Assembly (NCBI RefSeq): GCF_001194135.2
Contig: NC_068981.1
Location: 74,628,141 to 74,689,300, forward strand
Length of the DNA stretch: 61,160 nucleotides
Reading direction: 5' to 3'
Source of the DNA: Octopus bimaculoides
Taxonomy: Eukaryota
Part shown: piece by piece, positions 1,270 through 52,000 of the stretch
How the letters are laid out: each line of letters starts with the position of its first letter
Numbering within the stretch: position 1 is the stretch's first letter
Translations under genes and position numbers: made by a program
The notes under the pieces: model-generated
Database searches by the model: none
Seen by the model: the letters and a program-made list of their open reading frames with translations, nothing else
What the model was told of the DNA's origin: nothing

Positions 1270-1438
1270 GGTGCAGGATTGGGTGTGTAGTAAGTAGCTT
1301 GCTTACCAACCACATGGTTCTGGGTTCAGTCCCACTGCTTGGCACCTTGGGCAAGTGTCTTCTATTATAGCCTCAGGCCGACCAAAGCCTTGTGAGTGGA
1401 TTTGGTAGACGGAAACTGAAAGAAGCCTGTCGTATATA

Positions 1439-1469
<31 letters not shown>
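1270..1469 (+). mobile_element. tRNA-derived SINE (most abundant family here), head and core, runs into gap
   Basis: gggttcagtcccactg...gggcaagtgtcttct...ccaaagccttgtgagtggatttggtagacggaaactgaaagaagc plus (TG)(TA)n. Confidence 0.88.
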
Positions 1470-3451: not shown

Positions 3452-3842
3452 TTCTTTTATTCTTTTACTTGTTTCAGTCATTTGACTGTGGCCATGCTGG
3501 AGCTCTGCCTTAAAGGGTTTAATTTGAAGAAATCCATCCCAGGACTTATTCTTTGTAAGCCCAGTACTTATTCTATCGGTCTCTTTTGCCGAACTGCTAA
3601 GTAACAGTGGCATAAACACACCAGCGTCAGTTGTCAAGCGATGGTGAGGACAAACACAGACACACACACACACATAAATATATATATATATGACAGGCTT
3701 CTTTCAGTTTTTGCCTACCACATCCACTCACTAGGCTTTGGTCAGTCTGAGGCTATTTTAGAAGACACTTGCCCATGGTGCCACTCAGTTGGACTGAACC
3801 CAGAACCATGTGGTTGGGAAGCAAGCTTCTTACCACACAGTC
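3452..3842 (-). mobile_element. Full tRNA-derived SINE (same family)
   Basis: Reverse complement of the 1900-2340 family. Confidence 0.85.
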
Positions 3843-4347: not shown

Positions 4348-4733
4348 GTGGAGGCGCAATGGCCCAGTGGTTAGGGCAGTGGACTCGTGGTCATAGGATC
4401 GCGGTTTTGATTCCCAGACAGGGCGTTGTGAGTGTTTATTAAGCGAAAACACCTAAAGCTCCACGAGGCTCCGGCAGGGGATGGTGGCGAACCCTGCTGT
4501 ACTCTTTCACCACAACTTTCTCTCACTCTTACTGCCTGTTTCTGTTGTGCCTGTAATTCAAAGGGTCAGCCTTGTCACACTGTGTCACGCTGAATATCCC
4601 CGAGAACTACGTTAAAGGTAGACGTGTCTGTGGAGTGCTCAGCCACTTGCACGTTAATTTCATGAGCAGGCTGTTCCGTTGATTGGATCGACTGGAATCC
4701 TCGACGTCGTAAGCGACGGAGTGCCAACAATAA
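4348..4733 (+). mobile_element. Full-length tRNA-derived SINE with 10-bp TSD
   Basis: A-box tggcccagtgg, B-box ggttttgattccc, ccaacaa tail; TSD tatataaata at 4338-47 and 4734-43. Confidence 0.9.
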
Positions 4734-5363: not shown

Positions 5364-6068
5364 NNNNNNNNNNNNNNNNNNNNNNNNNNNNNNNNNNNNN
5401 NNNNNNNNNNNNNNNNNNNNNNNNNNNNNNNNNNNNNNNNNNNNNNNNNNNNNNNNNNNNNNNNNNNNNNNNNNNNNNNNNNNNNNNNNNNNNNNNNNNN
5501 NNNNNNNNNNNNNNNNNNNNNNNNNNNNNNNNNNNNNNNNNNNNNNNNNNNNNNNNNNNNNNNNNNNNNNNNNNNNNNNNNNNNNNNNNNNNNNNNNNNN
5601 NNNNNNNNNNNNNNNNNNNNNNNNNNNNNNNNNNNNNNNNNNNNNNNNNNNNNNNNNNNNNNNNNNNNNNNNNNNNNNNNNNNNNNNNNNNNNNNNNNNN
5701 NNNNNNNNNNNNNNNNNNNNNNNNNNNNNNNNNNNNNNNNNNNNNNNNNNNNNNNNNNNNNNNNNNNNNNNNTTTACATTGCTTAAATTTAATTCTGTTA
5801 TAAACATTCTTTTCTATGTTTGGAATAGTTTTATAGATTTAGATAATTTGTTGGAATTTTGTTTGTATTGTGAGAGTTATCATTTTCGCTTTTGATGCCT
5901 TAGTTGTGAAAAAAAGGAGGCTGCAGACTTTCAAAATATAAAATTTTTTAACCTCAGACTAAAGACTGTGTGAGAATGCTTACAACAGAGTAAACTCTAC
6001 TAAAAGCTTCCAAGGGCCAAGGTAATGGTATTAAATTAGGATGACAGATTAGAACTCCCCCCACAACC

Positions 6069-6427: not shown

Positions 6428-7032
6428 CTAACTCTTTAGTATTCAGATTTCTCTGTTAAGTCCAACGATTATTTACTCTTTTACTCTTTTACTTGTTTCA
6501 GTCATTTGACTGCGGCCATGGTGGAGCACCGCCTTTAGTCGAGCAAGTCGACCCCAGAGCTTGTTCTTTGTAAGCCTAGTACTTATTCTATTGGTGCCTT
6601 TTTGCTGAACCGCTAAGTTATTGGGACGTAAACACACCAGCACCGATTGTCAAGCGATGTTGGGGGCACAAACACACACACACACACACACACACATATA
6701 TGACGAGTTTCTTTCAGTTTCCGTCTACCAAATCCACTCACAAGGCTTTGGTCGGCCCAAGACCATAGTAGAAGACACTTGCCCAAGGTGCAATGCAGTA
6801 GGACTGAACCCGGAACCATGTGGTTGGTAAGCAAGCTTTTTACCAGCCACTCCTACACCTATGTTATTCATGTTGTTTTGAATTAATCATGCATTATCTT
6901 GTAACATTGAGATTTCAGTGATGGGATTTTTTACTTTTAGAATTACATTGTAGGCTAGGTGTGAGATTCCAGATCTGGCTGGTTTGAGCATAAAACAGAT
7001 AGAATATTTGGGCCTGAATACTAAAGGGTTAA
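6428..7032 (+). mobile_element. TTAA-flanked MITE interrupted by a SINE
   Basis: ctaactctttagtattcagatt..., SINE at 6471-6862, then ...ttgaattaatcatgc...tactaaagggttaa. Confidence 0.75.
6471..6862 (-). mobile_element. Full tRNA-derived SINE (same family) nested in MITE
   Basis: (ttttactc)n tail at left, head ending cactcctacacctat at right. Confidence 0.88.
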
Positions 7033-7603
7033 AGCAAAATTTGTGTAAAGTAATATGCATGAATTAGCAGTGTAAATAGATTGCATGACAAAATGCCTTG
7101 TGGTATTTGTTTCAGTCTTCTGTGTTCTGGGTTCAAATCCTGCTCAGATCAAGTTTGCAGAGTCAATAAAATTGCATGTCAGTCCAGGCTGGTGGATATG
7201 CAGGATTATTAGAGTACTAAACAAGATGTCTTGTATTTTTTCCAATTCTTCGTGAATCCTGCTAAAGGCACACAAGAATCTGGTTCTTGGGTACCTTAAT
7301 CTGAATTCACTTTCTTGCAAATATCTGTGTCAGAGTTTTAATTTGAGGATAACTCCTTCCTTTTCTCGTACTAGTCTTGGGACCCCTCAAAAATATATAG
7401 GATCATGGATACTACCCTTTGTTCTCTAACCAGTTCGAACATGTATTGAGCATGTTCAAACTGATAATAACATTAAAATTTCACTTAGCACTGCATAGCA
7501 CTCCCTCTCTCTAATTTACTTCCGGTGAGCCACCATATAGTTCTGCCTGTCACCATACGATGACTGGAAAAGCATAAGAGAGGTAATGTCTTCAATCAGC
7601 TCC

Positions 7604-7687
7604 TAGCGCTGCCTGCCTAGTGTCTGGAGACAGACGACACAACTACTCTGAAGTGCTAACAGCTCACAGTCTGGGTAGGTGGCACTG
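7604..7687 (+). ncRNA. Degenerate hammerhead (first tandem copy)
   Basis: Homolog of the 7943-8032 motif with core mutated (CAGACGA, GAAG, AGC); distal helix tagcgctgcctg/taggtggcactg largely retained. Confidence 0.55.
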
Positions 7688-7942
7688 CAAATTGATCTAG
7701 GTGTATACACACCATTTGTCAACAAGTGAGATATATTCTCCGTGACAAAACGCAGTGAGTAGCTTGTTCCCCAGTTCGAACATGCATTGAGCACATTCGG
7801 ACTGATAATAACATTGCAATTTCGCTTATCATTGCTTAGCGCTCCCACTCCATAATTTACTTATGTGAGTAGCCATATAGCACTACCAGCCACTGTATGA
7901 TGACTGGAAAAACATAAGAAAGTCAATCTCTTAATTTAGCCT

Positions 7943-8032
7943 GTAGTGTCATCTGCTTAGTGTCTGTGACTGATGAGGAGGTAACTATTCTGAAATGTTA
8001 ACATCTCACTGTCTGAATAGATGGCGCTGCGA
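7943..8032 (+). ncRNA. Type I hammerhead ribozyme, intact core
   Basis: Helix I gtga(7967-70)/tcac(8007-10); CUGAUGA 7971-77; helix II ggag/ttct around loop gtaacta; GAAA 7993-96; palindromic helix III tgttaaca; AUC site 8004-06; distal helix I 7943-56/8019-32. Confidence 0.8.
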
Positions 8033-8520
8033 GCTGATCTAGGTGTATATACACTATTTGTCAACAAGCAAGATATATTTTTCATGACAAAATGCAGTGA
8101 ATATATATATATGTATACATGTTCATATATATATATATATACATATATAGATATATATACATATATATNNNNNNNNNNNNNNNNNNNNNNNNNNNNNNNN
8201 NNNNNNNNNNNNNNNNNNNNNNNNNNNNNNNNNNNNNNNNNNNNNNNNATATATATAATGTATCTATGTATGTATCTGAGTAAGACACTTTAGTTATATA
8301 AACCATTTTGATGTATTGTTAGGAAATTTCTACTACTACAAATACTTGCTTTCCTGTGACTTGAATGCCTTGTACAATGTAAACACTAAATCTTTACAAA
8401 GAATCTGGTACTGACTTTCACCAATTGAGGAGTTAGACTGGTTGCTTTTCTTTCCTTTGGTGGCTTCTTCAACCAAACTAGTTCCATAAACTAAATTTCT
8501 ATATTCCCTTGAATAACATA

Positions 8521-12261: not shown

Positions 12262-12644
12262 GTGGAGGCGCAATGGCATAGTGGTTAGGGCAGCAGACTC
12301 GCAGTCATAGGATCATTGGTTTCGATTCCCAGAACGGGCGTTGTGAGTGTTTATTGAGCGAAAACACCTAAAGCTCCACGAGGCTCCGGCAGGGGATGGT
12401 GGCAAACCCTGCTGTACTCTTTCACCGCAACTTTCTCTCACTCTTACTTCCTGTTTCTGTTGTGCCTGTAATTCAAAGGGTCAGCCTTGTCACACTGTGT
12501 CACGCTGAATATCCATGAGAACTACGTTAAGGGTACACGTGTCTGTGGAGTTCTCAACCACTTGTGCGTTAATTTCACGAGCAGGCTGTTCCGTTGATCA
12601 GATCAACTGGAACCCTCAACATCGTAAGCGACAGTGCCAACAAC
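12262..12644 (+). mobile_element. Full-length tRNA-derived SINE (same family) with 12-bp TSD
   Basis: Colinear with 4348-4733; TSD atagattcaagt at 12250-61 and 12645-56. Confidence 0.92.
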
Positions 12645-19581: not shown

Positions 19582-19748
19582 ATGCAAATGTAATGGTCAT
19601 GCTAAAGCCTGTGAAAAAACCGCTGATAACCGTGTCCGGTGCAAGTGTGAACACAACACTGCTGGAGTAAGCTGTGAAAAGTGCAGTAGTTTTTACAATG
19701 ATAGACCCTGGAAAAGAGCAACAGAAACTGATGCTCAAGAGTGTCTAC
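19582..19748 (+). CDS. LAMC1: Laminin gamma exon (first LE repeat)
   Basis: ttttgtttcag|A TGC AAA TGT... = (R)[55 protein letters not shown]; donor C|gtaagt; 167 nt, phase 2 to 1. Confidence 0.95.
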
Positions 19749-21896
19749 GTAAGTGATTAAGTTAATCAAAATTCCTCATAGTATTTTATTTCTGTTAGAG
19801 AAGGCGCTGAACTGGGAGAATCGTTAGCATGCCAAGCAAAATGCTTAGTGGTATTTAGTCCATCTTCACATTTCAAATTCTGTTGAGGTCAACTTTGCCT
19901 TTCCTCCTTTCAAGATCGATAAAATAAGTACCAATTGAGCACTAGGGTCAATGTAATTGATTTTATCCTTCCCCTGAATTTGATGACCTTGTTGCCAAAA
20001 TTTGAAATCAATATTTTATTTCCATTCTAGTTTTTTTTATGAGGTTTAAGGACCCATCATATTTTAGTAGTACTTTTGAGGTGGTTAGTTGATATCATTA
20101 AACATTAAGACATTTCTGTTTGATGATGTTGTAACCTGTTCATCTGTTTGTTTATGTGCTTCCATTTCCATGAGCGCCTCCACTTGCTGGCATACTCAGG
20201 AAGCTTGCTGGCTATTGTCTTCTTGGTTGATGCTATCTCCAAGACTTCAACATGTGCTTCAAACACCAAATATTGCCTGCCTGTTCAATCTGTGTGCCCC
20301 TGTTCATGATCTTCATGGTTGATTGCTTGGTTTTGTAGCAAAATAAGCACCAGTGAGCAAGATGATTCACCTTTAGTTAAGATTGTATGTGAATCAGGGG
20401 GAGGTAAGCATTGTTGACAATGCTTATCAAAATTTATAAAGAGAAAGAGGAGCATCAAAAATGAAGAAAAAAATATTTTGGAAAATGTGTTGTCCAACAT
20501 AACTTGCAGTATTCTAACAGAAGATAAAATAAAGATGGGTCACATTAGTAGAAACGTTTTGAGTTCTCTGTGTGAAATATTTTGCATAGAATCCTGATGA
20601 TGAAAAAAATGATTTATAATAAATTTTTAATTGTTTTATGCCTGATTTTCTATACTGCCATAGACGAAGTGGGTATTTGTTTGAGGCCATATTTTCATGG
20701 TTGGGCGCTCTTCTTGTTGCCTACTATTTCCTGTTCTGCTAGTAAAATGTTCATTGAGAATATAAACATGATGGTACCATTTTTCTGCTCACTTGATCTG
20801 ATGCAAGAAGTGGATATGGCAATGTTTACATACTCTCACAAACACAAAGGATGGGCTTCTATATAGTTACCCTCTACCAGTTACACTCTCAAGGTATTGA
20901 CGATTCAAGGCAATAATACCAGATGTTTACTGAGTGGGGGTCATGCAGTGGAACCAAACCTAAGATTATTAGGTTGAGAAACAAACTTCATGAATGACTC
21001 AGTCATACCTGGGTGTTAATGATAGTGATGTTTTCTTTTATTGAGAAATAATATAATGGATAATTTGGAATCTGACAAAGAGATTTGATCTGAAATTTTA
21101 TTTTGAATCTGATATGCTTGCATCTTGGAAGAAGAGTTCTGATAACCATTTACAGCACATACATGTTTGGTTTTGTTCTATTTTATTATAGTAATAATCT
21201 TTTCAAAATGAACATTATCTAACATGAATATAGAAGGAATTATGTTAGTCACTCATATCATACACTTTTGTATATCATCATAATGACTATAATAGTCTTT
21301 GGTAGGAGTACCTCCCTCAATATCACTCCCCCTCAGCTGAGAGGTCTTACCTTGCATGTTACTTGGCGATCTCACCGGTGCTGGTGCCAAGTAAAATGTA
21401 TCCAGTATACTCTGTTAAGTGGTTGGTGTTAGGAAGAGCATCCAGCTATAGACACCATGCCAAAATAGAAAGTAGGACTTCTAAATCATTGCCAGCATGG
21501 AGAGCAGGTGTTAAATAATAACAATAATAATGATAAGAAGAAGAAGAAGAAGAATGATGATGATTGTGATAACAATGATGACAGTAATGATGATGATGAT
21601 GATGATCAGGAGGAGGTTTTGTTCTTTCTGTAAGTATTTTATAGATATCCTATAAAATTCACCAATTGCCAGTCAGTTTCATGTAGAAATATTTATTTTT
21701 GAAATGTGTAATACAATTACAAGAGGGATGTTTATAGAAAGAAGCAATTTCTGCTCAAGCATAATTTTGATAAATATAATAAAGTTTGTTTTAGCCTTTA
21801 TAAACATATGTTAATAAAATTAAATTTTCCTTTTGCATTGAAAGTTATACACAGTATAGCTGTCAAGGTTGAAAAAACTGAGTGATCAAAATACCA

Positions 21897-24226: not shown

Positions 24227-27200
24227 TCATCTAAGTATCCATGCCATAAAAAAATATGGACTCATATATTTACCAGTAGAGTAGGTATATTAATCTAAGT
24301 ATACAGAATTATAGATCCATTTCACCTAATCTTACCAATCAGTTTCATACAGGGGATTAGGTAACCATACATCGATAACAGCAAAGTTATGTTACACCAC
24401 TAATTCTTCAGGGATGGCAGGTATGGAAAAAATAAAACACTTGCTATCTTTGAAGAGCATATGGTGTTACTCAATCATGCCATTAATTAATATCCAGTGC
24501 AAAACTGATTGTCAAGATTAGCTGAAATGGATCTACAATACTGTATACTTTGATTAATGCATGTGTGTGTGTGTGTGTGTGTGTGTGTATAAGGTATACA
24601 TACCATATATNNNNNNNNNNNNNNNNNNNNNNNNNNNNNNNNNNNNNNNNNNNNNNNNNNNNNNNNNNNNNNNNNNNNNNNNNNNNNNNNNNNNNNNNNN
24701 NNNNNNNNNNNNNNNNNNNNNNNNNNNNNNNNNNNNNNNNNNNNNNNNNNNNNNNNNNNNNNNNNNNNNNNNNNNNNNNNNNNNNNNNNNNNNNNNNNNN
24801 NNNNNNNNNNNNNNNNNNNNNNNNNNNNNNNNNNNNNNNNNNNNNNNNNNNNNNNNNNNNNNNNNNNNNNNNNNNNNNNNNNNNNNNNNNNNNNNNNNNN
24901 NNNNNNNNNNNNNNNNNNNNNNNNNNNNNNNNNNNNNNNNNNNNNNNNNNNNNNNNNNNNNNNNNNNNNNNNNNNNNNNNNNNNNNNNNNNNNNNNNNNN
25001 NNNNNNNNNNNNNNNNNNNNNNNNNNNNNNNNNNNNNNNNNNNNNNNNNNNNNNNNNNNNNNNNNNNNNNNNNNNNNNNNNNNNNNNNNNNNNNNNNNNN
25101 NNNNNNNNNNNNNNNNNNNNNNNNNNNNNNNNNNNNNNNNNNNNNNNNNNNNNNNNNNCTACACATGTTTCAAAATATATGTGAGCTCTTCTACAAAGAA
25201 GTAAGAGCTGCTGGAATTCCACATATATTCATCTTCAGGGAATCAACATATAAAAGCAAGACAAATGCGAAATGATGAGGTAACTTATGAGCTAAGATGT
25301 TATATGGCCATGTAACATCTTAGCTCGTAATTTACCTCATCATTTTGCATTTGTCTTGCTTTTATATGTTGATTCCCTGAAGATGAATATATGTGGAATT
25401 CTGGCAGTTCTTACTTCTTTGTAGAAGAGCTCTCATATATTTTGAAACATGTGTAGGAATTAAAGGAACTTTTATTTATATGCATTTTGCACCATTTATT
25501 GTTATTATTCATATATATATATATATATAGAAAGAGAGAGAGATGTAATATGAACTATAGAGGGAGATATAGGAGGAATATAATTAAGTTTACAAATTGA
25601 AATTTAAAACAAAAATTCAGTTACAAAATTTCATGTTTCTATGTCTGTCTTTAGATATTGCCTTTTTACTTTAAAAAAAGATTTGAGAGTCTGCTTATGT
25701 TTTACTGCTGTAGCTATACTTCATGTTTGAATTAATGTATAAACAATCTGATCATGTCCCTTATGTCAGCATTCAAAGTATTTTCAAGCAGACATAGCTT
25801 GAGGTAATAATTTGCTTTTGTTTACATGAGTTTACAATTTAATAAAGATTAATAGAATTATTTAACACTAAAAAAGTTTCATTAAGTTTGGCTCTTTTAA
25901 TATCCATACATGGTCCTCGTACCAAATAGTTTTGAGATCTTTCCTAATTTCCATGTAAATATGTCAGATGTCGGTCGATTAGGGTTAAATCTTCAGATTA
26001 AAACCTTTCTAGTAGGCTGGTGGATTAACTTAGCTGAAATGCTCAAATAGATCAGTAAGTGCATTGTAGCTTTAGTTTTGTACTTGTCAGTCAAGAGTTT
26101 TGAATCTTTCCAGTACTGACTATTTTTCGACGGACCTAGAGTTGATGAAATAAGTAGTAATCTCATATGAAGAATCGTTGTTAATTGGCTGTACTGTAAA
26201 TTCCACTTTTGAATGAGGGTGCGATGAGGGAATGGCTTTGAGCATTTCAATTCATCTTAAACTGAGTGCTGTGTTAAAGCTAATACTCAGCCAGTGTACC
26301 AATGAGCTAGTGAAATCAATTAGCAAGATCCAGATGGTAAAGATGCTGAAGTGAGTAGTATGTTTGGCCTACTATTCAACCAGTGTACTAACCAGGTATT
26401 GAAATCAGTTATAAAGGACCAGGTTGTAATGATGTTGAGCTGGGTGGTAGAGATAGGCCTACCATTCAACTGGTATATCAATCAGTCATTGAACTCACTT
26501 AGCAACAACCATTCCACCAGTATACTAATCTGTTAGGCCAACCATTCAACTAATATACTATTGAAGTCAATTACAAAGAACCAGGTGATGACTGTTAAAC
26601 TAAATGAGATGTTAAATCTATCAATGAACCACTATACCAATCAATCAATTTGCAAGAACCAAGTGATGATGGTGTTAAGCAGGGTGGTATGTTAGGTCTA
26701 TGTGAAGATACATGGCTCAGTAGTTAGAGTGTCAGGCTCACAACCATGAGGTAATGAGTTTGATTCCCAGACTTGGCTATGTGTTGTGTTCTTGAGCAAG
26801 ACACATTATTTCACATTGTTCCAGTTCACTCACCTGTAGAAATGAGTTACGATGTCACTGGTACCAAGGTGTATTGGTCTTTACCTTTTCCTTGGATAAA
26901 ATCGGTGGCATGGGGAGGGGAGGTTGGTATGCATGGGTAACTATTGTTCTTCCATAAACAGCCTTACCTGGACTTGTGCTTTGGAAGGGAAGTTTCTAGG
27001 TGTAATCCCACGGTCATTCCTGACCGAAGGGGTTTTTTATGTTAGGTTTATCTGTCATTCATTCAGTGGATCAGTCTGGTAATGAAGACAAAACTATTGT
27101 ACCCAACCTCTCCAATTTATTGTCTTGAGCCCAAGTGTGAAGCTAATATTTTTTTAATATCACCTTTCTAGGTTCTGTTGATCTTCAATGTAATGCTCAA

Positions 27201-37300: not shown

Positions 37301-40300
37301 TGGGAACATGTTTGTCCATGAGGTAATATTAGCTTGCCTGGAACAAGTGGGGATTGGTGACAGGAAAGACATCTGGCTGTAGAAAATCTGTCTAAAATAA
37401 AATTTGAGAACCATGGAAAAGTGGGCATTGAATAATGACGATGGTGATGATTATATGTATGTATATATATATGTATGTATGTATTTACACACACATTTAT
37501 GTATTTATGTATAATGTTTAATTTTAGGTCGTTGTATCTGCAAGCATAACACTGCTGGCCGTAACTGTGAACAATGTTTGGAAGGTTTCTATGGTGATGC
37601 CAAAGGTGGAACTCCAAATGACTGTAGACCCTGTCCTTGTCCTAATAATGGCACCTGTATACAGCTTGACAATAAAGATGTTCATTGTACAAACTGTCCA
37701 CAAGGTTATGGAGGTAAGTAACTCGTTTTTAAAATCTAACTATTTTGTTGAATGGTTGGATTCATGTGACTTTCATAATTTCAGGGAATTGTTTTGTTAC
37801 ATATCCTTTCCCAAATAAATTAATGTGTATTTCAGAACCACTTTTGGCATGGTTGACATTAGGAAGGGCATCCAACCATAGAAACCATACCAAAGATTGT
37901 AACCTGGTGCAGCTCCCGTCCAACCCATGCCAGCATGGAACATGGACGTTAAATGATGATAATGATGATGATGTTGTTACTGAACCTTTTCAAAAGAGCA
38001 GTATTGTTTTACTGTACAGCTCCCCGGTTCTCTGTTCTTCAATTATAAATCAATAGCAAGTGTTAAAAAATGAGTAACTTTGAGACTTTGAAGAAATAAT
38101 CGTTTTAGTTTCACTGCTTCTGTGTTAGGTTCTTGTTATTGCTTTGTCAAATGGCAACAACTGTTGAAGCAATTCCCTCTTTTGATACAATTTGTTACAA
38201 CATGTCTTGAATGAAACAACAAACTGAAAGTCTTGAAATATTCATTGAATCAGCTGAATGTCAATCTCTGTAATTGTATTGCTAACATCTTAAATTTCCA
38301 ACTGTGAATTCTGTGCTTTGCTTTTTTCTTATAATCTCTTAATTTCAAATTCAAACTTCTAATCTTGCCTAACATTTTGAAGAAATTATCTCCCTTGTAA
38401 TAACTGTCCACTGAGGGAAACTTTTTTTTTTATTGTATTCCATTAACTCTGTGACTCATAAGAAACTGCAATTTGATGACTGGACAATATACCTGCTATC
38501 TATATATACTTACTTTCCTTCTTACTCGTTATGAAATCTCAAGTGCTGTAGGACTTATAGTGACAATTTATTAGTTCCACTTTCATGGAACCATCTCTTT
38601 TTGAATGAGATGTTGATCTATCACAGTTAACATTGCTAGTTGATCTATGATAAACTCACCAACAACTATTTGTTTACAAGGTGAACAGAGATCCTGTACA
38701 AATATATGAAGTAATGCACAACATGTACTGAATGGCCCACTACCGATTTATGGACCATAGTGAATGTTAAGTCATACTCTATTGAATAATATAGTTAAAA
38801 GTAAATTTATATTTAGAAACATTTTCTTCATGAACTGTGTAGACCAGTAGTTTTCAGTCAGGGTCCATATGGTCCCTAAGGGTTCATATCAGATTTTTGG
38901 GGTCCACATAACAAAATAGTAAAGTGGGGATGCATAATAGTATTTTAAGGGCCCCTGAAAAATTTTGCTCTAGATGTATGTATTGGTATATATTGCAAGA
39001 AATAGCTGCGTTTTCTCTAACATTTTGCACAGTTCAACCTACATAAGAATGTGTGAAAAGCAAAATAGGAATTTTGAAAGAAGTTTCTATAAGACTACTT
39101 TTTAAGCATCAAATGGCTATGGGTGCATCCATCAGAATAAAATAGTAATCAAAGGGATCCCTAGATAATAAATGGTTGAATTGAAAAAAAAAAATGTTCT
39201 CCTCATTCTAAGCTAACTGAATGTGTGTTAAGAGGATTCTGACTACTGTCTCAACAGGTTAAGCAAGCTTGAGCAGAAAATCTCTAGCTGTCTTCAGAAA
39301 AAAAAAAAAGTCTTTGGGCATGGCTGTGTGGTAAGAAGCTTGCTTCCTAACCACATGGTGTTCTGGGTTCAGTCCCACTGCATGACACCTTGGGCAAGTG
39401 TTTACTACTATAGCCTCAGGCAAACCGAAGCCTTGTGAGTGGATTTGGTAGCCGGAAACTGAAAAAAAGCCCATCATATATCTTTATCTATATATCTGTC
39501 TGTCTGTCTGTCTCTCTCTCTCTTTTGCTGAGACCCCCTTCGGTCATGACTGACCATGGGATTGCACCTAGAAAGTTACCCTCCCAGGCACAGGTCCAGG
39601 CAAAGTTGTTTATGGAAGACCAGCAGTTGCCTGTGCATACCAGCCTCCCTTGTCCACGCCACCAGTGTTATCCAAGGGAAAGGCAAATATATATATATAT
39701 ATATTTGTGTGTGTGTCTTTGTGTCTGTGTTCGTCCCCCCCATCATTACTTGACAATTGATGTTGGTGTTCTTATGTCGCTGTAACTTATTGGTTCAGCA
39801 AAAGAAACCGATAGAATAAGTACCGGGTTTACAAAGAATAAGTCCTGTGGTTGATTTCTAAGACTGAAATCCTTTGAGGTGGGGCTCCAGCATGGCCACA
39901 GTCAAATGATTGAAATGTGTAAAAAAATAAAAAGAATAAAAATTCTTAACAATTTTCAAAGCAGTTTGGTGTTATAATGATGTAAACGTTTTAAAGGTGA
40001 TATTTTGAGAATTTACCATTCCTGAAAGAATGGAATAAATTTTTATTTGGAAATCAAGACACTATTATTTCCATGCTATATTCATACAGGTGATCTATGC
40101 CAAGTTTGTTTGGATGGTTACTACGGTGATCCAACCGGACGTTATGGTCCTCGCACCACTTGCAAGCCCTGTCCTTGCAACAGCAACATCGATTTGAATG
40201 CTGTGGGTAACTGTAACAGGTAAGAAGTAGCATATTTTCATTTCAATTCATTTCAGACTTGACAGCTTTTTAGTCCCTGTTCAGTGCTGTACAATATTCA

Positions 40301-41564
40301 TTTTGTTCCTTTTGCCCAGCATGAAATTAAAAAAAAAACAGAAAGAAGTGCAAATTGATGAGGATTACTTTTTGAAAATGTATACTTGATTTATATTTAT
40401 TTATTGCTAAACAGGACCACTGGTGAATGCTTGATATGTCTTCACAATACTGCTGGCTTTTACTGTGAAAGATGTTTACCCAATTATTATGGTGATGCTC
40501 TTGCTTTGCCAAAGGGACAATGTAAAGGTTAGTTACAACATGAATTGATTCTTATTTATACACCCTTCATGCAGGCTACATGTCTTTAAATAATTCTTTC
40601 TACTACAGTCACAAAGCCTGAAATTTTGCAGGAGGGTGCTTAGTTGATTACATTGACCTTGATGTTCAACTGGTACTTACGTTATTGATCCTGAAAGGAT
40701 GAAAGGCAAAACTGACTTTGGCAGAATTTCTATTCAGAATGTGAAGAATCACAAGAAATGCTGCTTAGCATTTTTCTGGTGTTCTAATGATTCTGCTACC
40801 TCACCGCCTTTATAAGTCTTTAAATAATAGAGGCTGATGCATCTTATTTAGAAGAGCATGCATGATTAGAGAAAGAATAGTTAGAATTCTTGAGGGGATG
40901 CTTTAAAACAATACTTCTGAAGAGGACGTGGCCATATAAATGCATTGCAGTAAGATTTATGGAAGTTTTTGATTTGTGAAATGTTTTGATTCAAAACAAT
41001 TAAGGCATTCAGAAAATAGATGTTTTAACAAAGTGGATGTGAAAAGTAACTTAAAGTCTAAGGACAGATTGGCAAGATGAATTAATATAAAAAGCACCAC
41101 AACAAACACACTCAAAAACAGAATTTAAATATTTTCTGTTTTCTTTTTATAAATCCTTTGAAATTTCTTTTTTCTTTTAGTCACTTTGTATATCTCTTGT
41201 TTTCTCTCTAATTTCAGCCTGTAATTGTAATCCCAAAGGAATCCTTCACACTGGAATGTATTCTTGTGATCCAAGAAATGGACAGTGTCCATNNNNNNNN
41301 NNNNNNNNNNNNNNNNNNNNNNNNNNNNNNNNNNNNNNNNNNNNNNNNNNNNNNNNNNNNNNNNNNNNNNNNNNNNNNNNNNNNNNNNNNNNNNNNNNNN
41401 NNNNNNNNNNNNNNNNNNNNNNNNNNNNNNNNNNNNNNNNNNNNNNNNNNNNNNNNNNNNNNNNNNNNNNNNNNNNNNNNNNNNNNNNNNNNNNNNNNNN
41501 NNNNNNNNNNNNNNNNNNNNNNNNNNNNNNNNNNNNNNNNNNNNNNNNNNNNNNNNNNNNNNNN

Positions 41565-41604
<40 letters not shown>

Positions 41605-44337
41605 ACTTGGGGATGGTCATATATATCTATATATATATATAGTTGGATAAAATTTGGGTGTGTACAAAGCTATCTATGGTTTGTCTACATATATTGGTTA
41701 CTGAATGTTGCCATGCAGCAGGAATACTCCTTCACTGGATATACATCTAGAATTCTATAGTATCAATAGAGTTTATACAAAGAGATAAACAAGAGAAAAT
41801 ACATTGATTGATATTCTTTATTCATATCACTACAACTGTTTCTATACATAGTCAAAGCCATAGTACATTTGTGATATGATATAATTAACATATTATGTAA
41901 TGATGAGTTTCTTCAGGTGAGTATTTTGAGTAAATCCTTTGTTAAATTAGACTGTGTTTCACTCCACGCAAGAATGAACACCTAAAGCAACATGCTATTT
42001 TCAGCAATTTGTAGTCAAAACTAAACTCATAGATGAAATGATAGACGAAACACAAATGTAATAAAAATACAATAAACTGACTACCTTTCTTTTGGCAGTC
42101 ATTTTATTGTGGTTGGTGACACGTAAAAGCACCCACTACACTCTCTGAGTGGTTGGCGTTAGGCAGGGCATCCAGCTGTAGAAACTCTGCCAAATTAGAC
42201 TGGAGCCTGGTGTTGCCATCCGGTTTCACCAGTCCTCAGTCAAATCGTCCAACCCATGCTAGCATGGAAAGCGGACGTTAAACGATGATGATGATGATGA
42301 TGATGATGATGAAGAAGATAAAAGTGTTGGTCTGTTCGCTATTTCTTCAGTCTGTCGACTATAGATCTATTGGAACAAGACCTCTTCAAACCAATGAGAA
42401 TAAATAAGCATTATATTTCATGTGAATGTTAAAAGGTTAAAGAGGTATTCATCTCTTTATTTCATATGAACTCTTAAGACTATCTTTTGGTTTAATGATA
42501 ATTTTCTTATCTGCAGGTTGTGAATCTTGCCGTTGCAACCCAATTGGTTCGCTGGAAAGCAACTGTGACCCAGGCACAGGCCAGTGTAAATGTAAAAATA
42601 ACATTGTTGGCAAGCGATGTGATAAATGCTTACCTTATCACTATGGATTTTCAGTTGATGGCTGTAAACGTGAGTAACCCTATGATTAAGTAATCCTCGT
42701 GAAACTCAAATATTTAATTGACTTTACTTGCTACATAGTAGCTATTGTTCTGTGCTGTGTGTTTGTCAGTGTGATTTCCACAGATTACTCGCCCTCTCTC
42801 TCTGTCTCTCCTCTCTCTCTGTCTCTCCTCTCTCTCTGTCTCTCCTCTCTCTCTGTCTCTCCTCTCTTTCTCTCGTCTCTCCTCTCTCTCGTCTCTCCTC
42901 TCTCTCTGTCTCTCCTCTCTCTCTGTCTCTCTCTCCCACTCTAGGTGTGTAGTCATGTATGTCTGTGTAAATATTTACATCCTGCATTTCACTTAGGCTT
43001 ACCATCATTTCAGAATTAATAAAATACTGCAGCAGTGTGGGTGGGAGCAGGAGAATGAGCCAGGCTGGAAGGTGGGGTTAGGGAAGAAACTGTGGGCCAA
43101 GAAGTCATGTAGGTTGTGGGTTTGTTTGAAGGAGGGGAAGGGTAGGTTGGAGAAGATGTGTGAAGTGGAGGGGTTGGACTGGTGTCACTGGAAGCCTCGG
43201 AGAATGGTGCATTGGAGAGGTAGAGTGGAGGAGTGGTAGTTGAGGGGAAACGAGATGGGTAACGGCGGGGTGGGTGCAGGGAGAACAGAGGTTACGGAAT
43301 GTGCTCTGGCAAGGGCAGTGTGGATAGTGGTGAGGAGACATCCACGAAGGATGAAGTGTCAAGCCATGAGTTAGGACTGAGTTTCAAAGTCATGGTTGTC
43401 ACTGCAGAGCTTACACAGACGCAGGAATTGGGAGTAGGGGATGGGGAGTTTTGTGTGGGTAGGGTGGGAGAAGGAGAAGTTGAGGTATGAGTGTGAGTCG
43501 GTGTGTTTGTAGTGAATGGAGGTAGTGAGAGTGGAGTTGTGTATGTTGACCAAAATGTCAAGAAAGGCGATGGAAGTGTTGGAAATGGTGTGGGAGAATT
43601 TGTGGGTAGGATGGAAGGATTGGACAAAAGAGATGAAGGAGTCTAGTTGTTTGCGGGAGAGCGAGGTCGCACCGATACAGACATCAATATAATGACCATA
43701 TAGTTCAGGAGTGGGACCAGTGAATCTTGAAAATATTTGGGCCTCAGTGTAGCCAACGAACAGGTTTGCATAGTTGGGGCCCATTCTTGTTCCCATGGCC
43801 ACTCCATTACGGGTTACTGGAAATGTTCTTGGCTTCGGGTAAAAGATAGTACAGGAGGTCCAGTTAATCATGATTTTATTCAACATATTCTCCTCTCAGA
43901 TTCGCACACTTATTGCAGTGTTCCTTCAGTTTTTCTAAGCCATGTAAAAGAACTCAGATATTCTTAAAGCCAGGAACTTTTCAGTACTCTCTCGTATATT
44001 GGCATTAGGAATGACATCCAGCTATAGAAACTATGCCAAATTAGACTGGAACTTGATGCGGCTATCCAGCTTACCAGTTCCTGTCAAACCATTTCCAAAC
44101 TCTTGCAAGCATGGAAAGCAGTTGCCAAATGGGGTGGGAGAAAGCAGCGATACAATGAGCAGGGCAGTGAGGGCAGAGAAGGGGATTGGAAGACAATCAT
44201 AGTTATATATATATGTATATATATTTGTTTATATTATGTCAAATTATATATTAATAGAAACAAAGACCTGGGTATAAAAATGGGGTGGTGAAGGCAGTGA
44301 TACACTGAGCAGAGCAGTCACAGAGATTGTAAGACAG

Positions 44338-44391
<54 letters not shown>

Positions 44392-46001
44392 ATGTCTCTT
44401 AAAAGATAGAGCTCAAAATCGATGCATTGAAGATACTTTATTGCAGCAACAATTATAATAGCAGAAACAACCACAATAAGCCAAACCTATGCACATTTCA
44501 ATAGGGTATCCAGGATAAATAAACCACATCATAAGATGTCTCATAAAATATTGTAACATATTACAACATATTACAAATTATAAATTGCTGGATACTCCAT
44601 CTCTTCAGGGTCGCATTATTGCCATCACTAATACTAGTATTATTAGCAAAACACACACATCATCAAAGAGGGTGAAAGAATAATCAACGGTATGCAACCT
44701 ACCATCGTTATTTTCTTTCCGAATGTCATATATATTAATGCTTGTTTTTATGTCAAGTTATATATTAATAATAAAAAAAACGCCAGTGTAACGTTAAACT
44801 CAAGAATTACTCAATACATTTTAGCTGGACACATGTTTATTAAACTTTGACAAGAAGCAGGGCAATGGGGACTTCAAATTTTCTTTCTACTAGCCTTTAT
44901 CAGATTATGTTTGTGTGCATATATGTATGTATGCACACACACACACACACACGCACACATATATGTCAAGCATTTTTGTTATGTACCTGAATATGTATTT
45001 TACCAATTTTATGAATTGCAGGTTGTCAGTGTGATCCACTTGGTTCCTATGACCAGCAATGTGATGACAAAGGGGCCTGCAAATGTCGTCCCACAACTAC
45101 AGGTGACAGATGTGACCGGTGTCGAGAAAACAAATATAACATCACTGCTGGTTGTATAGGTGAGTAGATCTAAAGACCTACAGTCTTTTTTTCTCTTCTT
45201 TTATCCCATTTTTGTCATTTGTATCATGTCACTGACTTTTTCGATAATCATGTTCTGCTTGGTCATGTGACATTTTTTCTCTTAACAGTTGGTCATCTTT
45301 AATTTGTTCTCTTATCAATGTATATGTAATTTTATTATATTTTTTTTTTATCTAACCAACTAGTCATATAGTTGAACTTACTTTCTAATACATATGTATC
45401 TATCTATCTATCTATCTGTCTGCCTCTCTTCCTACCTACATATGTACCTACCTACCTACCTACCTACCTACCTACCGACCTACCTACATACATATATACA
45501 TAATGACCGTCCACTCGTGACCAAGGAAGACCATTACTGACCTTCAGGAACATTGTGTGCTCTAGGACTAACTTACTAAAAATAAGATAAATATATACTA
45601 AAAATAAGATAAATATATATAGGGGGAAAAAACCCCAAAAAGAAACCGCACATATAGAGGTCGGCAATGCCTGTGCTGAGTTTTAGGTCCAATAAGGCTT
45701 GCGCAACACCTCATAGACCCTCTCCACTTTATTGACATTATCCAGAGACAAGCCGGAGCAAGAAGTTTGGTGCCAATATGAGTTGCAGGCTCAGAGATGT
45801 GGGAGCACCGTGATCTCTAGCACAAACCAAAGATCCCCAAAATGTCCAATGCCATTCCCTGCATATCTGGTTTTATATCAGAGTGACCTTCACCTAGAGA
45901 CATGCTTCAACAAACGCTGAGGGGTGCCTCACTCCCAGTGGTCTTTCAGCACGCCGGACACCATCCCGGAATTTCTGCACACCCGTGCTACATACATACA
46001 T

Positions 46002-46033
<32 letters not shown>

Positions 46034-49000
46034 TTATATTATATACCTGTGTGGCTGTGTGGTAAGAAGTTTGCTTTCTAACCCTATGGTCACAGGTTCA
46101 GTTGACCAAAGCCTTATGAGTGGATTTAATTGATAAAAACTAAGAGATTCCCATCATATATATGTGTGTGTGTGTGTGTCTTTTTGCCTTGACTCCATGT
46201 GATAGTTCTAAATGAATGTTCTTTCATTTCTAATCTTCCATGGAAACATATTTGATAATCAGGAATATTAGCTTACATGGAAACAGGGCATGGTTGGCAA
46301 CAGGAAGGGCATCTGTTTGTGGAACATCTGCATCAATAAATTCTGTCTAACCCATGCATGCATAGAAATGTGAATGTTAAACCATGATAACACTGTTTAA
46401 CATGTTTTTTGTCCTTGGGTAGCAACTGTTATTTCCTGTTTGCATACCCCTAGAAAGTATGAAAAATGGTTATTATTTTCTTCCTACTTTGCTTTGTTTA
46501 CATTATGCTCCTCCCGCTATTCTTGTTCATGGTCAAAGATGCACATATTGTGAGCCACTAAAGGACATGTTCAAGTGGTTAAAGGTCAAGCGAATCTGTG
46601 GTATTGAGCAGAATATTTGCTATAACGATATTTCTGCTTCAGCAGTTCAGCTCTGAATCTATCTGAAATGTAATGGAAAATAGGTCAGTTTCAAAACATT
46701 GATGTCCAGGTCAGAAAAGCAAAGTTTGAAGAGAACAGTAGTCACTTCCTTTGATTTCTAGATGGAAGCAACTTGGAAATAACATTGACCAAAGAAAAAA
46801 GAATAAATAAAATAAAATTTTGATGCATAGTGTATTGTATATAGATGCAGTTAGGCTAAGTAGTTAAAAGGTTTCTTTTTTGTAACTACAAGGCCCTAGT
46901 TTAATTAACTGATGAACTTGGGTAAATGCCATTTTATATAGCTTTGAGTTTGACCTGTTCTGTGTGATTGAAATTGGGTTGATGGAAAACTATATAGAAG
47001 CCTATTGGATGGACTGTCCCTGTAATTCAAATGAAACCTTCATTATATACATTGTGTTTATGTGTTAGGCTACATGTCTCTGTGGAATACTCGGCTACTT
47101 ACACATTAATTGATGTGCAAGTAATTCAGTTATCAGACGACTGAATCCATGTTGTTGAATGATGAAGAACTATTCCTCTAGCCATCCATTAATATAAAAG
47201 TTCTGAATTAAAATCTTCCACCAAACCTTAGTCACAATGTATGTTCCTGACACTAGCTTAATGATAGCTAAGGTATTTTACTAAATTCTTTGTTATATTT
47301 AAAATTAATTGAAAGAAACACAGCGCCTCAACAGAAATATGGTAACAAAAAGGCTAAGTGATGATGATGTGTGTATATATATATATAAGAATTTAAGGAA
47401 TGGAGAAAACGCATGTTATAATTGCATACTTTATTCCTACATATGTTTCAAAGGATTACAACCTGTGTGATCCATAGGGATCTTTGATATTAAGATTGTA
47501 ACCTTCTCATCAGGGAAAGCATGGGAATCATCTTAAACGTAAGACATTATGACCGATTATGAAAACAATAGATCTATTGTTTTCATAATCGGTCATAATG
47601 TCTTATGTTTAAGATGATTCTCATGCTTTCCCTGATGAGAAGGTTACAATCTTAATATCAAAGATCCCTATGGATCACACAGGTTGTAATCCTTTGAAAC
47701 ATATGTAGGNNNNNNNNNNNNNNNNNNNNNNNNNNNNNNNNNNNNNNNNNNNNNNNNNNNNNNNNNNNNNNNNNNNNNNNNNNNNNNNNNNNNNNNNNNN
47801 NNNNNNNNNNNNNNNNNNNNNNNNNNNNNNNNNNNNNNNNNNNNNNNNNNNNNNNNNNNNNNNNNNNNNNNNNNNNNNNNNNNNNNNNNNNNNNNNNNNN
47901 NNNNNNNNNNNNNNNNNNNNNNNNNNNNNNNNNNNNNNNNNNNNNNNNNNNNNNNNNNNNNNNNNNNNNNNNNNNNNNNNATATATATATATATATATAT
48001 AAAATCTGTTAGTTGTTCATAAGTCAGAGAAAAATGGACATTGAATATGCAAAATAGAGAGATCAAATTTTTATATCATTGAGCAGTATATTACTAGTAA
48101 TGGCACATAACTGGTCAGTTTCACACCAACTGTTGCACTTGACAATATTGACTACTCTTGTCATTATTGCCAAGTGCAATAGTGAAACCCAAATTAACAT
48201 TTTGACCAGCTGTATATCATAACTAGTAGTATACTGCCCAATGGTGTGTGTGTGTAAAATTAGCTAGGGAGGTGGAGCAGTCAGTATCCTTTGCAGGCTC
48301 ACCTAGACTAGTGAGGTTATTGCAGCTGGTTCTCAACTTGAATAATTACAGATTAATGTCGGTGCACAAAAAATGTGAGCTGGGAGAGAACCAGAAGTGT
48401 GGAGTGAATGCTCCCAATCCAGTTATGTCTCTAACTGATAACATGATTTATTTTATGTATGTCTTGCAAATTGTTTGGTAGTTAGGGTCATTGTGGAATG
48501 TGTGAAATGATTTTAATTTCCAACTTCAGTCATTCTACTCCATTTGTATCCTTAATACTGTGAAAAAATACATCACAATCTCACAGTTTCATTTTACCTC
48601 CATAAATCTGAGGACACATTTGATAAATTCAAGAAACCATTATATTTACTAGATTGAAATCCTAAAGCCAAGGAACCATGTAGAAAGAATTGGTGTGGGT
48701 GCTGCATAAAAAGCACTGGTGATAGTGCCATTTAAAAAGCATCCGGTACACTCTGTGAAGTGGTTGGCATTAGGAAGGGCATCCAGCTGTAGAAACCATG
48801 CCAGAACAGACTATGGAGCCTGGTGCAGCCCCTGGCCTTGCCAGTTCCTGTCAAGCTGTCCAACCTACACCAGCATGGAAAACGGATGTTAAATGTATAT
48901 GATGATAAAAAATCAGTCTTTTCATTAATTTGTTTTCGTAAAATGATTGCCTGTAAGATATTGGAACCCCTTCACTATTTGTTCCTTTTCTTGTATACTG

Positions 49001-52000
49001 TAGCCGAAGAAATCATTACTATAATAATTATTATTAATTATAATAATTATTTAGATTATTTTCAATTCGTTTCAGTTTGAAATTCATCAAAAATTTACGA
49101 TTTCTTTTTCCTCTTCAGATTGTCCACCTTGTTACAATTTGGTCCAGCAACAAGTAAATGAACACCGCAAGCACTTGGAAGAGATGCGTAATTATACAGA
49201 AGTCATTAAAACCAGCCCACAAGCTTTCAATGATTCAGATTTTCTTACGCATATGAAGAAAGTCAGTGATTCAGTTGAGAAATTAATCAATGATGCTCGT
49301 CGTATCAGTAGTAAGCCTAATTTTGTTCTGCACTTTTAAGCTTTCTCTGTTTAGCAGTTATTTCTCCTTTAGATTCATTGTTTCTTTCCTTTTGGCTTTT
49401 GGAATATTGGCCAGAAAGTATTTTGCCGAGCTTACTATTTATTGTTGTTGTTTAGCCCCATTTTGAACTCTGGTCTTCCTGATCAATAATAATCAAAGCA
49501 TTCCAACTGTCTCCATGTTGACTTTTCAGGTATCTAAGAATGCATCATCTAATGCGTTCTTTTCTTGTTTTGAAAATGATGATATAATTTTAATGTAGAT
49601 TAGGCTGTGGTTTCCAGCAGGTCAAGTGATTGCATAGTTTCCCCTCTGGCTTTAACCTTTACAATGAAGCCCATGTGTTTTATTAGGTTGATAGTAATGT
49701 CTGGTTTCCATACCATTAGAAACAGCAAGTGTGTTGCAGATAAATGATTTTTCCAGATTACTTGGTGCCACTTCTCTTGTTAGGCATACTGAGATGTGAA
49801 GAATTAACCATTTTGTTTGCTCACAATGGTTAGCACAGGCATAATATTAGATTGTTCTGAAAATAACAACACTTAGAGCGGCCATTTATTGAGTGAAAAC
49901 ACCTAAAGCTCCATGAGGCTCCGGCAGGGGGTGGTGGCGACCCCTGTTGTACTCTATTGCCCCAACTTTCTCTCGCACTTTCTTCCTGTTTCTTGAGTAA
50001 AGCTGTGATCGACTGGTGTCCCGTCCAGCTGGTGGGGAGCACATACACCATAGAAACCGGGAAACCGGACCCATGAGCCTGGCTAGGCTTTAAAAGGGCA
50101 CATAAATAAAATAAGTACCAGTTGAACATTGGGTCGATGTAATCGACTTACTTCCTCCAACGAAATTGCTGGCGTTGTGCCAAAATTTGAAACCTATATT
50201 TACAGAAAGTGTCTTCTAGTGAAGCCTCTGACCAACTAAAGCCACGTGAATAGATTTGATGGACAGAAACTGAAAGAAGCTCTCTCTCACATATGCATTG
50301 TTTATGTGAGTGTTCACTGGTTGTAAACAATGACTTCACAAACAAACAACAATATTTGTTTACAGTCCACTGCAAAAGCTTGTTTGGGTTTTTTGACATG
50401 TCTTCACATATTCTTGACATGTTATATGAGCTTTGTAAACAAAAGGTTCATTTAACTAACAATGTTTGTTTGCAGTCTTCCATGTAACCATGCTTGGGTT
50501 GTTTGTTGTTCCATAGACTGGAGGATTATCACATTGTTCAGAAACAGGCAGTTGTTGGTGTTAGGAAGAGCATCTGGGCTTAGAAAACTCAGTGACAATG
50601 TTGATTTATCTGACTCATGCAGGCATGGAAATGTAGTTTTCAAAATGATGATGATTATTTCATATGTATATATGATAGACTCACCTGTCGAACGCAATGC
50701 ATGAATGTTTAGTTTTTGCTGAACAACCTGCACAAATGATTTGTTTATAGTAATCAAATGCTGGTGCCACACATTAGCTCACTCCCTCTATCAAATTGTT
50801 GATGAGTGAACAGGTGCACTGTGCACCATGAGTTGGGTGTCGAAGTGATCACAGAGCAACATGAGATGAAGTGTTTTGCTTAAGAACACAATGCACCACC
50901 CAGTCTAGGAATTGAAACCATACTCACTAGATCGTGAGTGCAACACCCTTACCACTAAGCCATACATCCTCATATATTTATATATTTCTTTTGTTTTCCC
51001 AGGAACAAATAGTACTTTTGGCACGCAGTTGAATGATTTAAAGAACGCCATTTCGGACATCATGGACAAATGTGGTATGATAGCTGGTAGTGTTGAAGCT
51101 GCTGACAAAGATATTCATCGCACACAAGCCTTCATTACAGAAGCACAAGATGCTATAAGACGGGCTGAGAGAGAGATAGCCAGAGCTTCTGATTACATCG
51201 ACAATGAAGGACAAGCAGCATTGAAACAAGCTCAGCTTGCCACCACTAAATTTGGAACACGTTCTGACAAAATGAAAAGTATTGCAGCCAGAGCTAAGCT
51301 AGCTGCTAAACAGTAAGTAAAATGAAGCGGAGTTGTGTAATTCTTGTTGATACGTAAGTAATCAGGAAATGAAGTGTATTTAGTGTGTTGTTGTATTGGA
51401 AATACATTATCAGGAATATCCAACTTGGGCTTGTGAAGACTTATTGGGGCAAGCGAAAGCGAAACCGTCAATGGCACCTGAGCCCAGCATCGCCTTCCTG
51501 GCACATGTAAAGACGGCACATGTAAAGACATTTGAGCGAGATCATTGCCAGTGCCGCCGAACTGGCTCCTGTGCAGGTGGCACGTAAAATACACCATTTT
51601 GAGCGTGGCCGTTGCCAGTACCGCTTGACTAGCCTTCGTGCCGGTGGCACGTAAAAGCACCCACTACACTCTCGGAGTGGTTGGCGTTAGGAAGAGCATC
51701 CAGCTGTAGAAACTCTGTCAAATCAGATTGGAGCCTGGTGTAGCCATCTGGTTTCACCAGTCCTCAGTCAAATCGTCCAACCCATGCTAGCATGGAAAGC
51801 GGATGTTAAACGACGATGATGATGATCCATCTAACTTATCTGGAATATAGAATATTAAAGTGATTATTTTGATGTTGAGTCAAGCTGAACTATATATGTA
51901 TGTATTTTATCTTTTTATTTTGTGTTACTTTTTAGACAGATGGAAGATGCCAAAGAAACTGAGAAAAATGCAAATGAAGCTTTAAATATTTCAAGAGAAG

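Follow-up and report, generated by a model that had tools for sequence, protein, structure and literature searches.

A tandem repeat in a laminin-gamma-like locus of Octopus bimaculoides is probably a fossil dimer of a hammerhead-bearing retrozyme

The 61,160-nt stretch of Octopus bimaculoides DNA analyzed here (contig NC_068981.1; hereafter the window) holds a laminin-gamma-like gene, remnants of mobile elements, and, at 7419-8103, a 685-bp tandem repeat that is the subject of this report. The array is made of two head-to-tail units of 342/343 nt (Table 1). Tandem Repeats Finder (TRF), run on the window, placed it at 7430-8100 with a period of 342, 2.0 copies, and 77% matches. Aligned with MAFFT, 7419-7761 and 7762-8103 are 75% identical, the only indels being one of 1 nt and one of 2 nt (local period, 340 to 342), and the substitutions comprised 59 transitions and 23 transversions. 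Both analyses bear out a first-pass annotation of this DNA, which had noted two diverged tandem units with a period of 340 to 343. The array has a GC content of 41% and occupies 1.1% of the window, where neither blastn nor an nhmmer profile of both units detected a third copy of the unit. At its 3′ end it abuts a (TA)n microsatellite that runs into an 80-N assembly gap (8169-8248) and resumes on the other side, so that the array does not extend into the gap. Eight such gaps, totaling 2636 N, interrupt the window, a draft short-read scaffold, mostly within or beside (TA)n or (CA)n microsatellites.

Unit 2 contains a complete type I hammerhead ribozyme (HHR) with all elements in the right order. 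Its nucleotides match the conserved C3 U4 G5 A6 N7 G8 A9, G12 A13 A14, A15.1-U16.1, and H17 of the motif. Helix III is formed by the pairs A7995-U8004, U7996-A8003, and G7997-C8002 within the perfect palindrome AUGUUAACAU, and two such segments can dimerize with a computed energy of -14.2 kcal/mol. A 5x3-nt internal loop separates the GUGA/UCAC pairing of proximal helix I from a long distal stem (7942-7960 with 8013-8031), which is present in the minimum free energy (MFE) folds of both units. Canonical metazoan type I HHRs have a helix II of 4 bp and a helix III of 1 to 2 bp capped by a palindromic loop of 2 to 4 nt (PMC4209133), a layout that unit 2 fits with its 4-bp helix II and its 2 bp of helix III beyond 15.1-16.1 closed by a palindromic UUAA tetraloop. 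The first-pass claim that unit 2 carries every hammerhead core element in order is thus upheld by the sequence and by the descriptor match reported below, but its coordinates were one base too high. CUGAUGA spans 7970-7976 (not from 7971) and GAAA 7992-7995; C17 is nucleotide 8005, after which, rather than after 8006, the predicted cut falls; and the cut-to-cut monomer, given as 343 nt (7664-8006), is corrected to 342 nt (7664-8005).

Table 1. Features of the window, with the tandem array and its hammerhead elements listed first
Feature	Coordinates	Strand	Basis or remark
Repeat unit 1, with degenerate hammerhead domain	7419-7761	+	343 nt, GC 43%; TRF and alignments
Dead hammerhead domain of unit 1	7626-7667	+	CAGACGA (U4>A), 2-nt deletion, helix II lost, GAAG (A15.1>G), AGC (U16.1>G)
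Repeat unit 2, with complete hammerhead core	7762-8103	+	342 nt, GC 39%; TRF and alignments
Distal part of helix I, 5′ arm	7942-7960	+	Pairs with 8013-8031; MFE and hammerhead-constrained folds; 82% of cells paired over five copies
Proximal helix I, 5′ strand GUGA	7966-7969	+	Pairs with UCAC 8006-8009 (four Watson-Crick pairs); kept in 3/5 family copies
Core box CUGAUGA (C3 to A9)	7970-7976	+	Identical in L007_uC
Helix II and loop 2	7977-7991	+	GGAG 7977-7980 with UUCU 7988-7991 (G.U, G-C, A-U, G.U); 7-nt loop 2 GUAACUA
Core box GAAA (G12 to A15.1)	7992-7995	+	
Helix III, perfect 10-nt palindrome AUGUUAACAU	7995-8004	+	3 bp including A15.1-U16.1; UUAA loop
C17	8005	+	Predicted self-cleavage between 8005 and 8006, from sequence
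Helix I, 3′ strand	8006-8031	+	UCAC, internal loop, distal arm 8013-8031
(TA)n microsatellite abutting the array 3′ end	8101-8168	.	Possible insertion target; sequence and TRF
Laminin-gamma-like gene	19582-51316	+	EGF-like exons and coiled-coil exon
EGF-like exons	19582-19749, 23.78-23.95, 27.2, 29.1, 30.7, 35.9-36.05, 37.5-37.7, 40.1-40.2 kb, 42495-42677, 45015-45164 (about)	+	
Laminin coiled-coil exon	~50.95-51.3 kb	+	
Penelope-like element reverse transcriptase relic	43371-43886	-	253 homologues; in a laminin intron; YIDD degraded to YIDV
LINE-type reverse transcriptase, C-terminal fragment	54777-55190	-	By eye; no Pfam match at E<=0.01
Mariner-type transposase fragment	57984-58427	-	Pfam Transposase_1, E = 1.2e-21
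Assembly gaps	1470-1827, 5364-5772, 8169-8248, 24611-25158, 41293-41564, 47710-47980, 55665-55764, 56917-57514		

A strict descriptor, requiring the full core, a helix I of at least 4 bp, and helices II and III of at least 3 bp each, matched the window once; the expectation from dinucleotide-shuffled windows is 0.0025 per window. A second descriptor encoding the published canonical metazoan HHR layout (PMC4209133) matched unit 2 and nothing else in the window, and it found no match in 3000 shuffled windows or in 65 kb of other animal loci. Since the repeat covers so small a share of the window, a chance motif falling inside it is very unlikely.

The corresponding domain of unit 1 is decayed. 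It had been read beforehand as hit at three core positions, in CAGACGA, GAAG, and AGC; the three motifs do read so, but the C at position 7 is harmless (this core position is variable), and the true damage to the core consists of U4>A, A15.1>G, and U16.1>G, to which the losses of helix II and of proximal helix I must be added. Having lost U4, A15.1, and U16.1, unit 1 possesses neither a catalytic core nor a cleavage site.

Related copies of the unit were reached through an antisense open reading frame (ORF) of 81 aa (7603-7848, minus strand) that reads through the hammerhead region. A word-indexed protein search with this ORF returned no match. An exhaustive HMMER search retrieved P0122 (207 aa, E = 4.5e-22) and P0124 (59 aa, E = 2.4e-5); a third match, P0123, with nine matched stretches, was rejected as an unrelated ORF of a short-period repeat. 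The contigs of P0122 and P0124, designated L007 and L010, are Logan assemblies from runs SRR11869384-94. Another contig of this run series, L001, aligns to a laminin exon and intron of the window with 76 to 80% nucleotide identity, and the source of L007 and L010 is therefore a fairly close relative. With nhmmer, the unit was detected in both contigs (E-values of 1e-47 to 1e-63). In L007, five consecutive profile pieces on the minus strand (columns 243-345, 42-343, 3-307, 247-345, and 5-99) make up a tandem array of at least 3.3 units that reaches the contig end and includes a 60-nt internal duplication, while L010 has columns 277-343 followed by 5-334, equivalent to 1.2 units. Because the flanks of L007 and L010 are unrelated to those in the window, the three loci represent independent insertions of a probably dispersed family rather than orthologues. 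The anticipated existence of other genomic copies with a conserved core is hence confirmed at two independent loci of a related species, in one unit of which the complete core and proximal helix I are kept despite only 61% identity to unit 2. No match turned up when JGI metagenomes were scanned for two exact patterns and IMG/VR for one.

The arrays also differ in architecture. The duplication in L007 (minus strand, 1334-1429 and 1432-1500) involves about 60 nt of the unit (columns 247-307), generates a unit of ~400 nt, and explains the doubled LTN.VYTP motif of P0122. The window array (at 8103) and that of L010 (at ~954-962) end within ~10 nt of the same unit phase (column ~345), and the L007 array ends elsewhere; the starts differ, at column 1 in the window and column 277 in L010. 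Across only three loci, these boundaries hint weakly that copies share a fixed 3′ terminus and are truncated at the 5′ end. Another weak hint concerns (TA)n as the insertion target of the repeat: an array placed at random would touch a (TA)>=6 tract in just 1.7% of cases, but the arrays in L007 and L010 do not adjoin (TA)n.

To compare cores, we built a five-copy alignment (A2) of the two window units (win_u1 and win_u2), two units of L007 (L007_uB and L007_uC), and the L010 copy. L007_uC reads GUGA-CUGAUGA-...-GAAA-UCUUAACA-UU-UCAC, i.e., its core is complete, U17 being an allowed variant, and its helix II is decayed. Unit 2 of the window and L007_uC are 61% identical overall, yet they agree at 19 of 20 functional positions (12 in the core and 8 in proximal helix I), and the sole change, C17>U, is an allowed one. 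Their longest identical run is GTGACTGATGAGG. The 19/20 level was reached by 92 of 200,000 random 20-column sets (P ~5e-4) and at 1 of 349 offsets of the slid mask; this pair was chosen for its intact cores, and correction for the 10 possible pairs weakens the value to P ~5e-3. Purifying selection acting on the ribozyme while its ancestors were active would leave such a pattern. The alignment also informs on helix II, in that C11.1 is kept in L010 (CCGAAA) and C11.4 in win_u1 and L007_uB. As judged from these sequences, this implies an older helix II of the form GGAG/CUCC with the canonical G10.1-C11.1 pair, the U residues that the window has at these two sites being probably products of CpG-type C>T decay. 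With C restored at 11.1 and 11.4, the computed energy of the core helices improves from -0.5 to -6.1 kcal/mol.

Non-long terminal repeat (non-LTR) retrozymes are tandem units of 150 to 450 bp, arranged as dimers to multimers, with a GC content below 45 to 50% and a type I HHR in each unit (PMC7229834; 10.64898/2026.07.22.740005); they are non-coding and dispersed, and they coexist with Penelope-like elements (PMC7229834; PMC7761336; 10.64898/2026.07.22.740005). Of these traits, the following are seen here: a tandem period of 342 nt, a GC content of 41%, a complete HHR in unit 2 and L007_uC, a non-coding unit, and a relic of a Penelope-like reverse transcriptase (RT) in the window. Specifically, the unit is non-coding in that it has no Pfam match, stops in every frame, and no codon-position bias, and, short of a formal search for primer-binding-site and polypurine-tract motifs, it shows no LTR-type features. 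The tandem unit, the unit 2 core, and the copies at two further loci thus support the earlier proposal of a relic of a retrozyme family. We consider it likely that these 685 bp represent a non-LTR retrozyme preserved as a fossil dimer, whose ~342-nt units each once carried a canonical type I hammerhead, and that the family was probably once moved by Penelope-like elements. If so, the family consensus would be expected to read GUGA-CUGAUGA-GGAG...CUCC-GAAA-UGUUAACA-UH-UCAC.

The window locus and the L007 array are relics. A recent preprint reserves the term "active" for retrozymes with two consecutive complete hammerheads (10.64898/2026.07.22.740005); unit 1 of the window is broken, and so is the unit next to the intact one in L007. 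The absence of a cleavage site in unit 1 renders the window locus dead as a retrozyme, and dimeric cleavage through the palindromic helix III would need the core of unit 1. The locus can almost certainly release neither monomers nor circles. Its sequence leaves room for no more than a single, inefficient cut in the intron RNA.

Besides the choice of the compared pair, several observations weigh against interpretation as a retrozyme. The first-pass annotation had suggested a check against the Rfam hammerhead models, but no copy scores: at gathering score or E<=10 (106-nt and 4-kb searches), no such model lists the window, a 901-nt region, the 106-nt segment 7935-8040, L007, or L010, the models having been run without a positive control. 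The other Rfam matches, to microsatellite-driven miRNAs and weakly to C/D-box RNAs, were rejected as chance. Within unit 2, proximal helix I has 4 bp instead of the canonical ~6 before loop 1, the core helices total only -0.5 kcal/mol, and adopting the hammerhead fold costs 5.3 kcal/mol relative to the MFE; where G10.1-C11.1 is usually invariant, both window units (CUGAAA) have a G.U pair instead. The core is broken in three of the five copies (L010, win_u1, and L007_uB), divergence between the two window units peaks in the hammerhead region, and the unit was reached at only three loci in two genomes.

The lack of covariation adds to these adverse points. Covariation was assessed by placing the observed substitutions at random while keeping their spectrum. 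Between the window units, 75 of the 102 MFE pairs of the monomer are kept, against 72.6 +/- 3.2 expected (P = 0.28), and the pairs of the distal stem are kept no better than random (P = 0.28 to 0.78). In this stem, two C-G -> U-A double changes are offset by two U.G -> C.A breaks. Nor is there covariation among the five copies, as 423 of 500 shuffles do as well; 79% of cells are paired in register, versus 32 to 50% with the partners slid. Covariation in the helices, also suggested as a test at the outset, was therefore found at neither level. The statement that distal helix I differs in sequence but still pairs is correct insofar as the stem pairs in both units; the cause, however, is the transition-rich substitution spectrum and not compensation, and the persisting distal pairing is not evidence of selection. 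As for overall folding, the plus-strand monomer folds better than shuffled sequences (z = -3.0; 1 of 100 shuffles as good), and the minus strand does not (z = -1.05).

The distal pairing belongs to a long stem (7598-7629 with 7664-7697 in unit 1; 7938-7969 with 8006-8039 in unit 2) in which the units differ almost exclusively by C/T changes in the 5′ arm and by A/G changes in the 3′ arm. A hybrid stem joining the 5′ arm of unit 2 to the 3′ arm of unit 1 is the most stable (-36.9 kcal/mol), which is compatible with plain transition bias.

Other origins of the repeat were weighed against the same evidence. The units could be fragments of terminal repeats (pLTRs) from an autonomous Penelope-like element that lost its coding part, an origin that is hard to separate in principle from an independent retrozyme but that we regard as unlikely. 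The lack of an RT or endonuclease ORF beside the units at any of the three loci argues against it, as do the three or more consecutive units without a coding insert in L007 and a canonical layout (4-bp helix II, real helix III, and helix I internal loop) that is not of the minimal Penelope type. Moreover, the unit is unlike the surroundings of the RT relic and bears no similarity to ~65 kb around five related Penelope-like loci of other organisms (nhmmer, descriptor, and Rfam hammerhead searches), a result that also tells against the retrozyme interpretation. Points in favor of pLTR remnants are the Penelope-like RT relic in the same window, the type I hammerheads with palindromic helix III carried by tandem pLTRs of Penelope-like elements (PMC4209133), the phylogenetic nesting of retrozymes among pLTRs (10.64898/2026.07.22.740005), and the contact of the array with (TA)n, a known target of some Penelope-like elements (PMC8557442).

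The silence of the Rfam models, the lack of covariation, the weak thermodynamics, and the absence of the core from three of five copies would all be accommodated if the repeat were an ordinary dispersed tandem repeat or transposon fragment that was never a ribozyme, with a chance hammerhead-like motif common to its copies by descent. We deem this very unlikely in view of the low expectation for the looser descriptor, the empty set of shuffled windows for the canonical layout, the position of the match inside so small a part of the window, a core far better kept than the rest between two strongly diverged copies, and the fact that the differing bases of other copies improve helix II. That the repeat encodes a minus-strand protein, or a C/D-box small RNA with CUGAUGA as C box and CUGA as D box, is highly improbable. 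The antisense frame is open over 81 codons in the window and 207 codons in L007, but a unit of 342 nt equals 114 codons, which lets chance ORFs run across units; the frame has no Pfam match, every frame of every unit contains at least three stops, and differences are spread evenly over codon positions (7/5/5). The matches to the archaeal C/D sRNA models sR12 (14.5 bits) and sR41 (13 bits) fall far below the gathering scores of 38 and 54 bits, the boxes lie 15 nt from any terminal stem, and the weak scores arise because CUGAUGA and CUGA mimic C and D boxes. A fossil non-LTR retrozyme therefore stays our preferred reading of the array.

In its genomic setting, the repeat most likely lies, in sense orientation, in an intron of at least 19.5 kb of the laminin-gamma-like gene, since no N-terminal-domain exon was found in 1-19.5 kb (tblastn with an approximate LN-domain query, and hence a lead only). 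The EGF-like exon from 19582 to ~19749 is bounded by a polypyrimidine-cag acceptor and a gtaagt donor. The two units diverge by 25%, compared with 20 to 24% between the introns of the two species, so that the insertion would be roughly as old as the species split. Relatives of the Penelope-like RT relic combine RVT_1 and HTH_animal domains with a GIY-YIG endonuclease just downstream, which is the canonical signature of Penelope-like elements.

Additional repeats populate the window. A short interspersed repeat occurs at 6696-6831 (minus strand) and 1302-1469 (plus strand) and in L010 (1561-1696), with 66 to 71% identity, and its peptide is also encoded at, e.g., 2001-2201, 3630-3752, 6616-6852, 39414-39782, and 60283-60441. 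It looks like an abundant SINE-like family, for which ARAGORN found no tRNA. The plus-strand segments 4432-4590 and 12347-12505, 7.9 kb apart, are near-identical over 159 nt (their translations differ at 4 of 53 residues) and are probably two copies of another interspersed repeat. Finally, a 67-nt tandem repeat (1.9 copies, 78% identity) is located at 51531-51656, just downstream of the laminin coiled-coil exon.

Among known systems, the family most resembles the non-LTR retrozymes of the mussel Mytilus galloprovincialis (PMC7229834) in its mollusc host, low GC content, single type I HHR per unit, and coexistence with Penelope-like elements, with units of 342 bp here and 350 to 390 bp there. 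Mussel hammerheads lack most archetypal loop-loop nucleotides (PMC7229834), and the same may hold for ours. The mussel family comprises ~5000 hammerhead copies, with demonstrated self-cleavage and abundant circular RNA (PMC7229834), whereas ours was reached at three old, decayed loci, and outside the core the two families are not similar in sequence. Newt satellite 2 and the axolotl elements Rtz_331 and Rtz_353 have comparable units of 330 to 350 bp with type I hammerheads and a very short helix III whose palindromic tetraloop allows dimers, and a weakened helix II base also occurs in axolotl HHR_Amex2 (PMC7229834). They differ in their vertebrate host, up to ~120,000 copies, long arrays, and active expression, and the helix III described here (2 bp plus A15.1-U16.1) is, in contrast to theirs, of "invertebrate" strength. 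With the minimal hammerheads of Penelope-like pLTRs (PMC4209133), the family has in common the type I topology, the palindromic 15.x-16.x segment, the tandem arrangement, and probably the same mobilizing machinery. However, pLTR hammerheads have a helix II of 7 to 8 bp, a bulged base after A9, and usually no helix III, and they flank an RT-endonuclease ORF (PMC4209133), none of which applies here.

Type I hammerheads have already been reported from a cephalopod, the giant squid, whose genome annotation lists 235 Rfam Hammerhead_1 loci (PMC6962438). Those loci pass the Rfam model and were not characterized as repeats, whereas our copies score with no Rfam hammerhead model. Our literature search found no paper describing cephalopod retrozymes. 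The high interest initially attached to this locus is nevertheless to be tempered, because non-LTR retrozymes of molluscs and cephalopod Hammerhead_1 matches (PMC6962438) are already known. Retrozymes being known from mussels, corals, and salamanders, the present family is a credible but unsurprising addition; the class, the hammerhead layout, and the link to Penelope-like elements are published, and the window locus is inactive.

By analogy with the retrozyme cycle (PMC7229834; PMC7761336), active members of the family would have been transcribed by read-through into multimeric RNA, in which each hammerhead would cut after H17, either singly or as a dimer through the palindromic helix III. 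The cut monomers would then be ligated into circles, and Penelope-like elements would supply the reverse transcriptase and endonuclease that copy the RNA and insert the resulting tandem cDNA. There is a small chance that the family survives, with arrays of intact hammerheads somewhere in this genome or that of the relative transcribed into abundant ~340-nt circular RNAs. These would be the first retrozyme circular RNAs in cephalopods, and their 19- to 25-bp stems would be natural substrates for the heavy adenosine-to-inosine editing known in these animals. In a surviving family, the end phase shared by two of the three arrays, with different starts, would point to priming at a fixed 3′ end and not at random positions of the circle.

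More generally, the locus offers a worked example of how fossil retrozymes missed by curated covariance models can be recognized by the preservation of the catalytic core across copies, and in practice it can seed genome-wide searches for intact cephalopod arrays and circular RNAs. If our reading is correct, the known range of non-LTR retrozymes would grow to include a cephalopod-like genome, with one family persisting, in decayed form, in two species.

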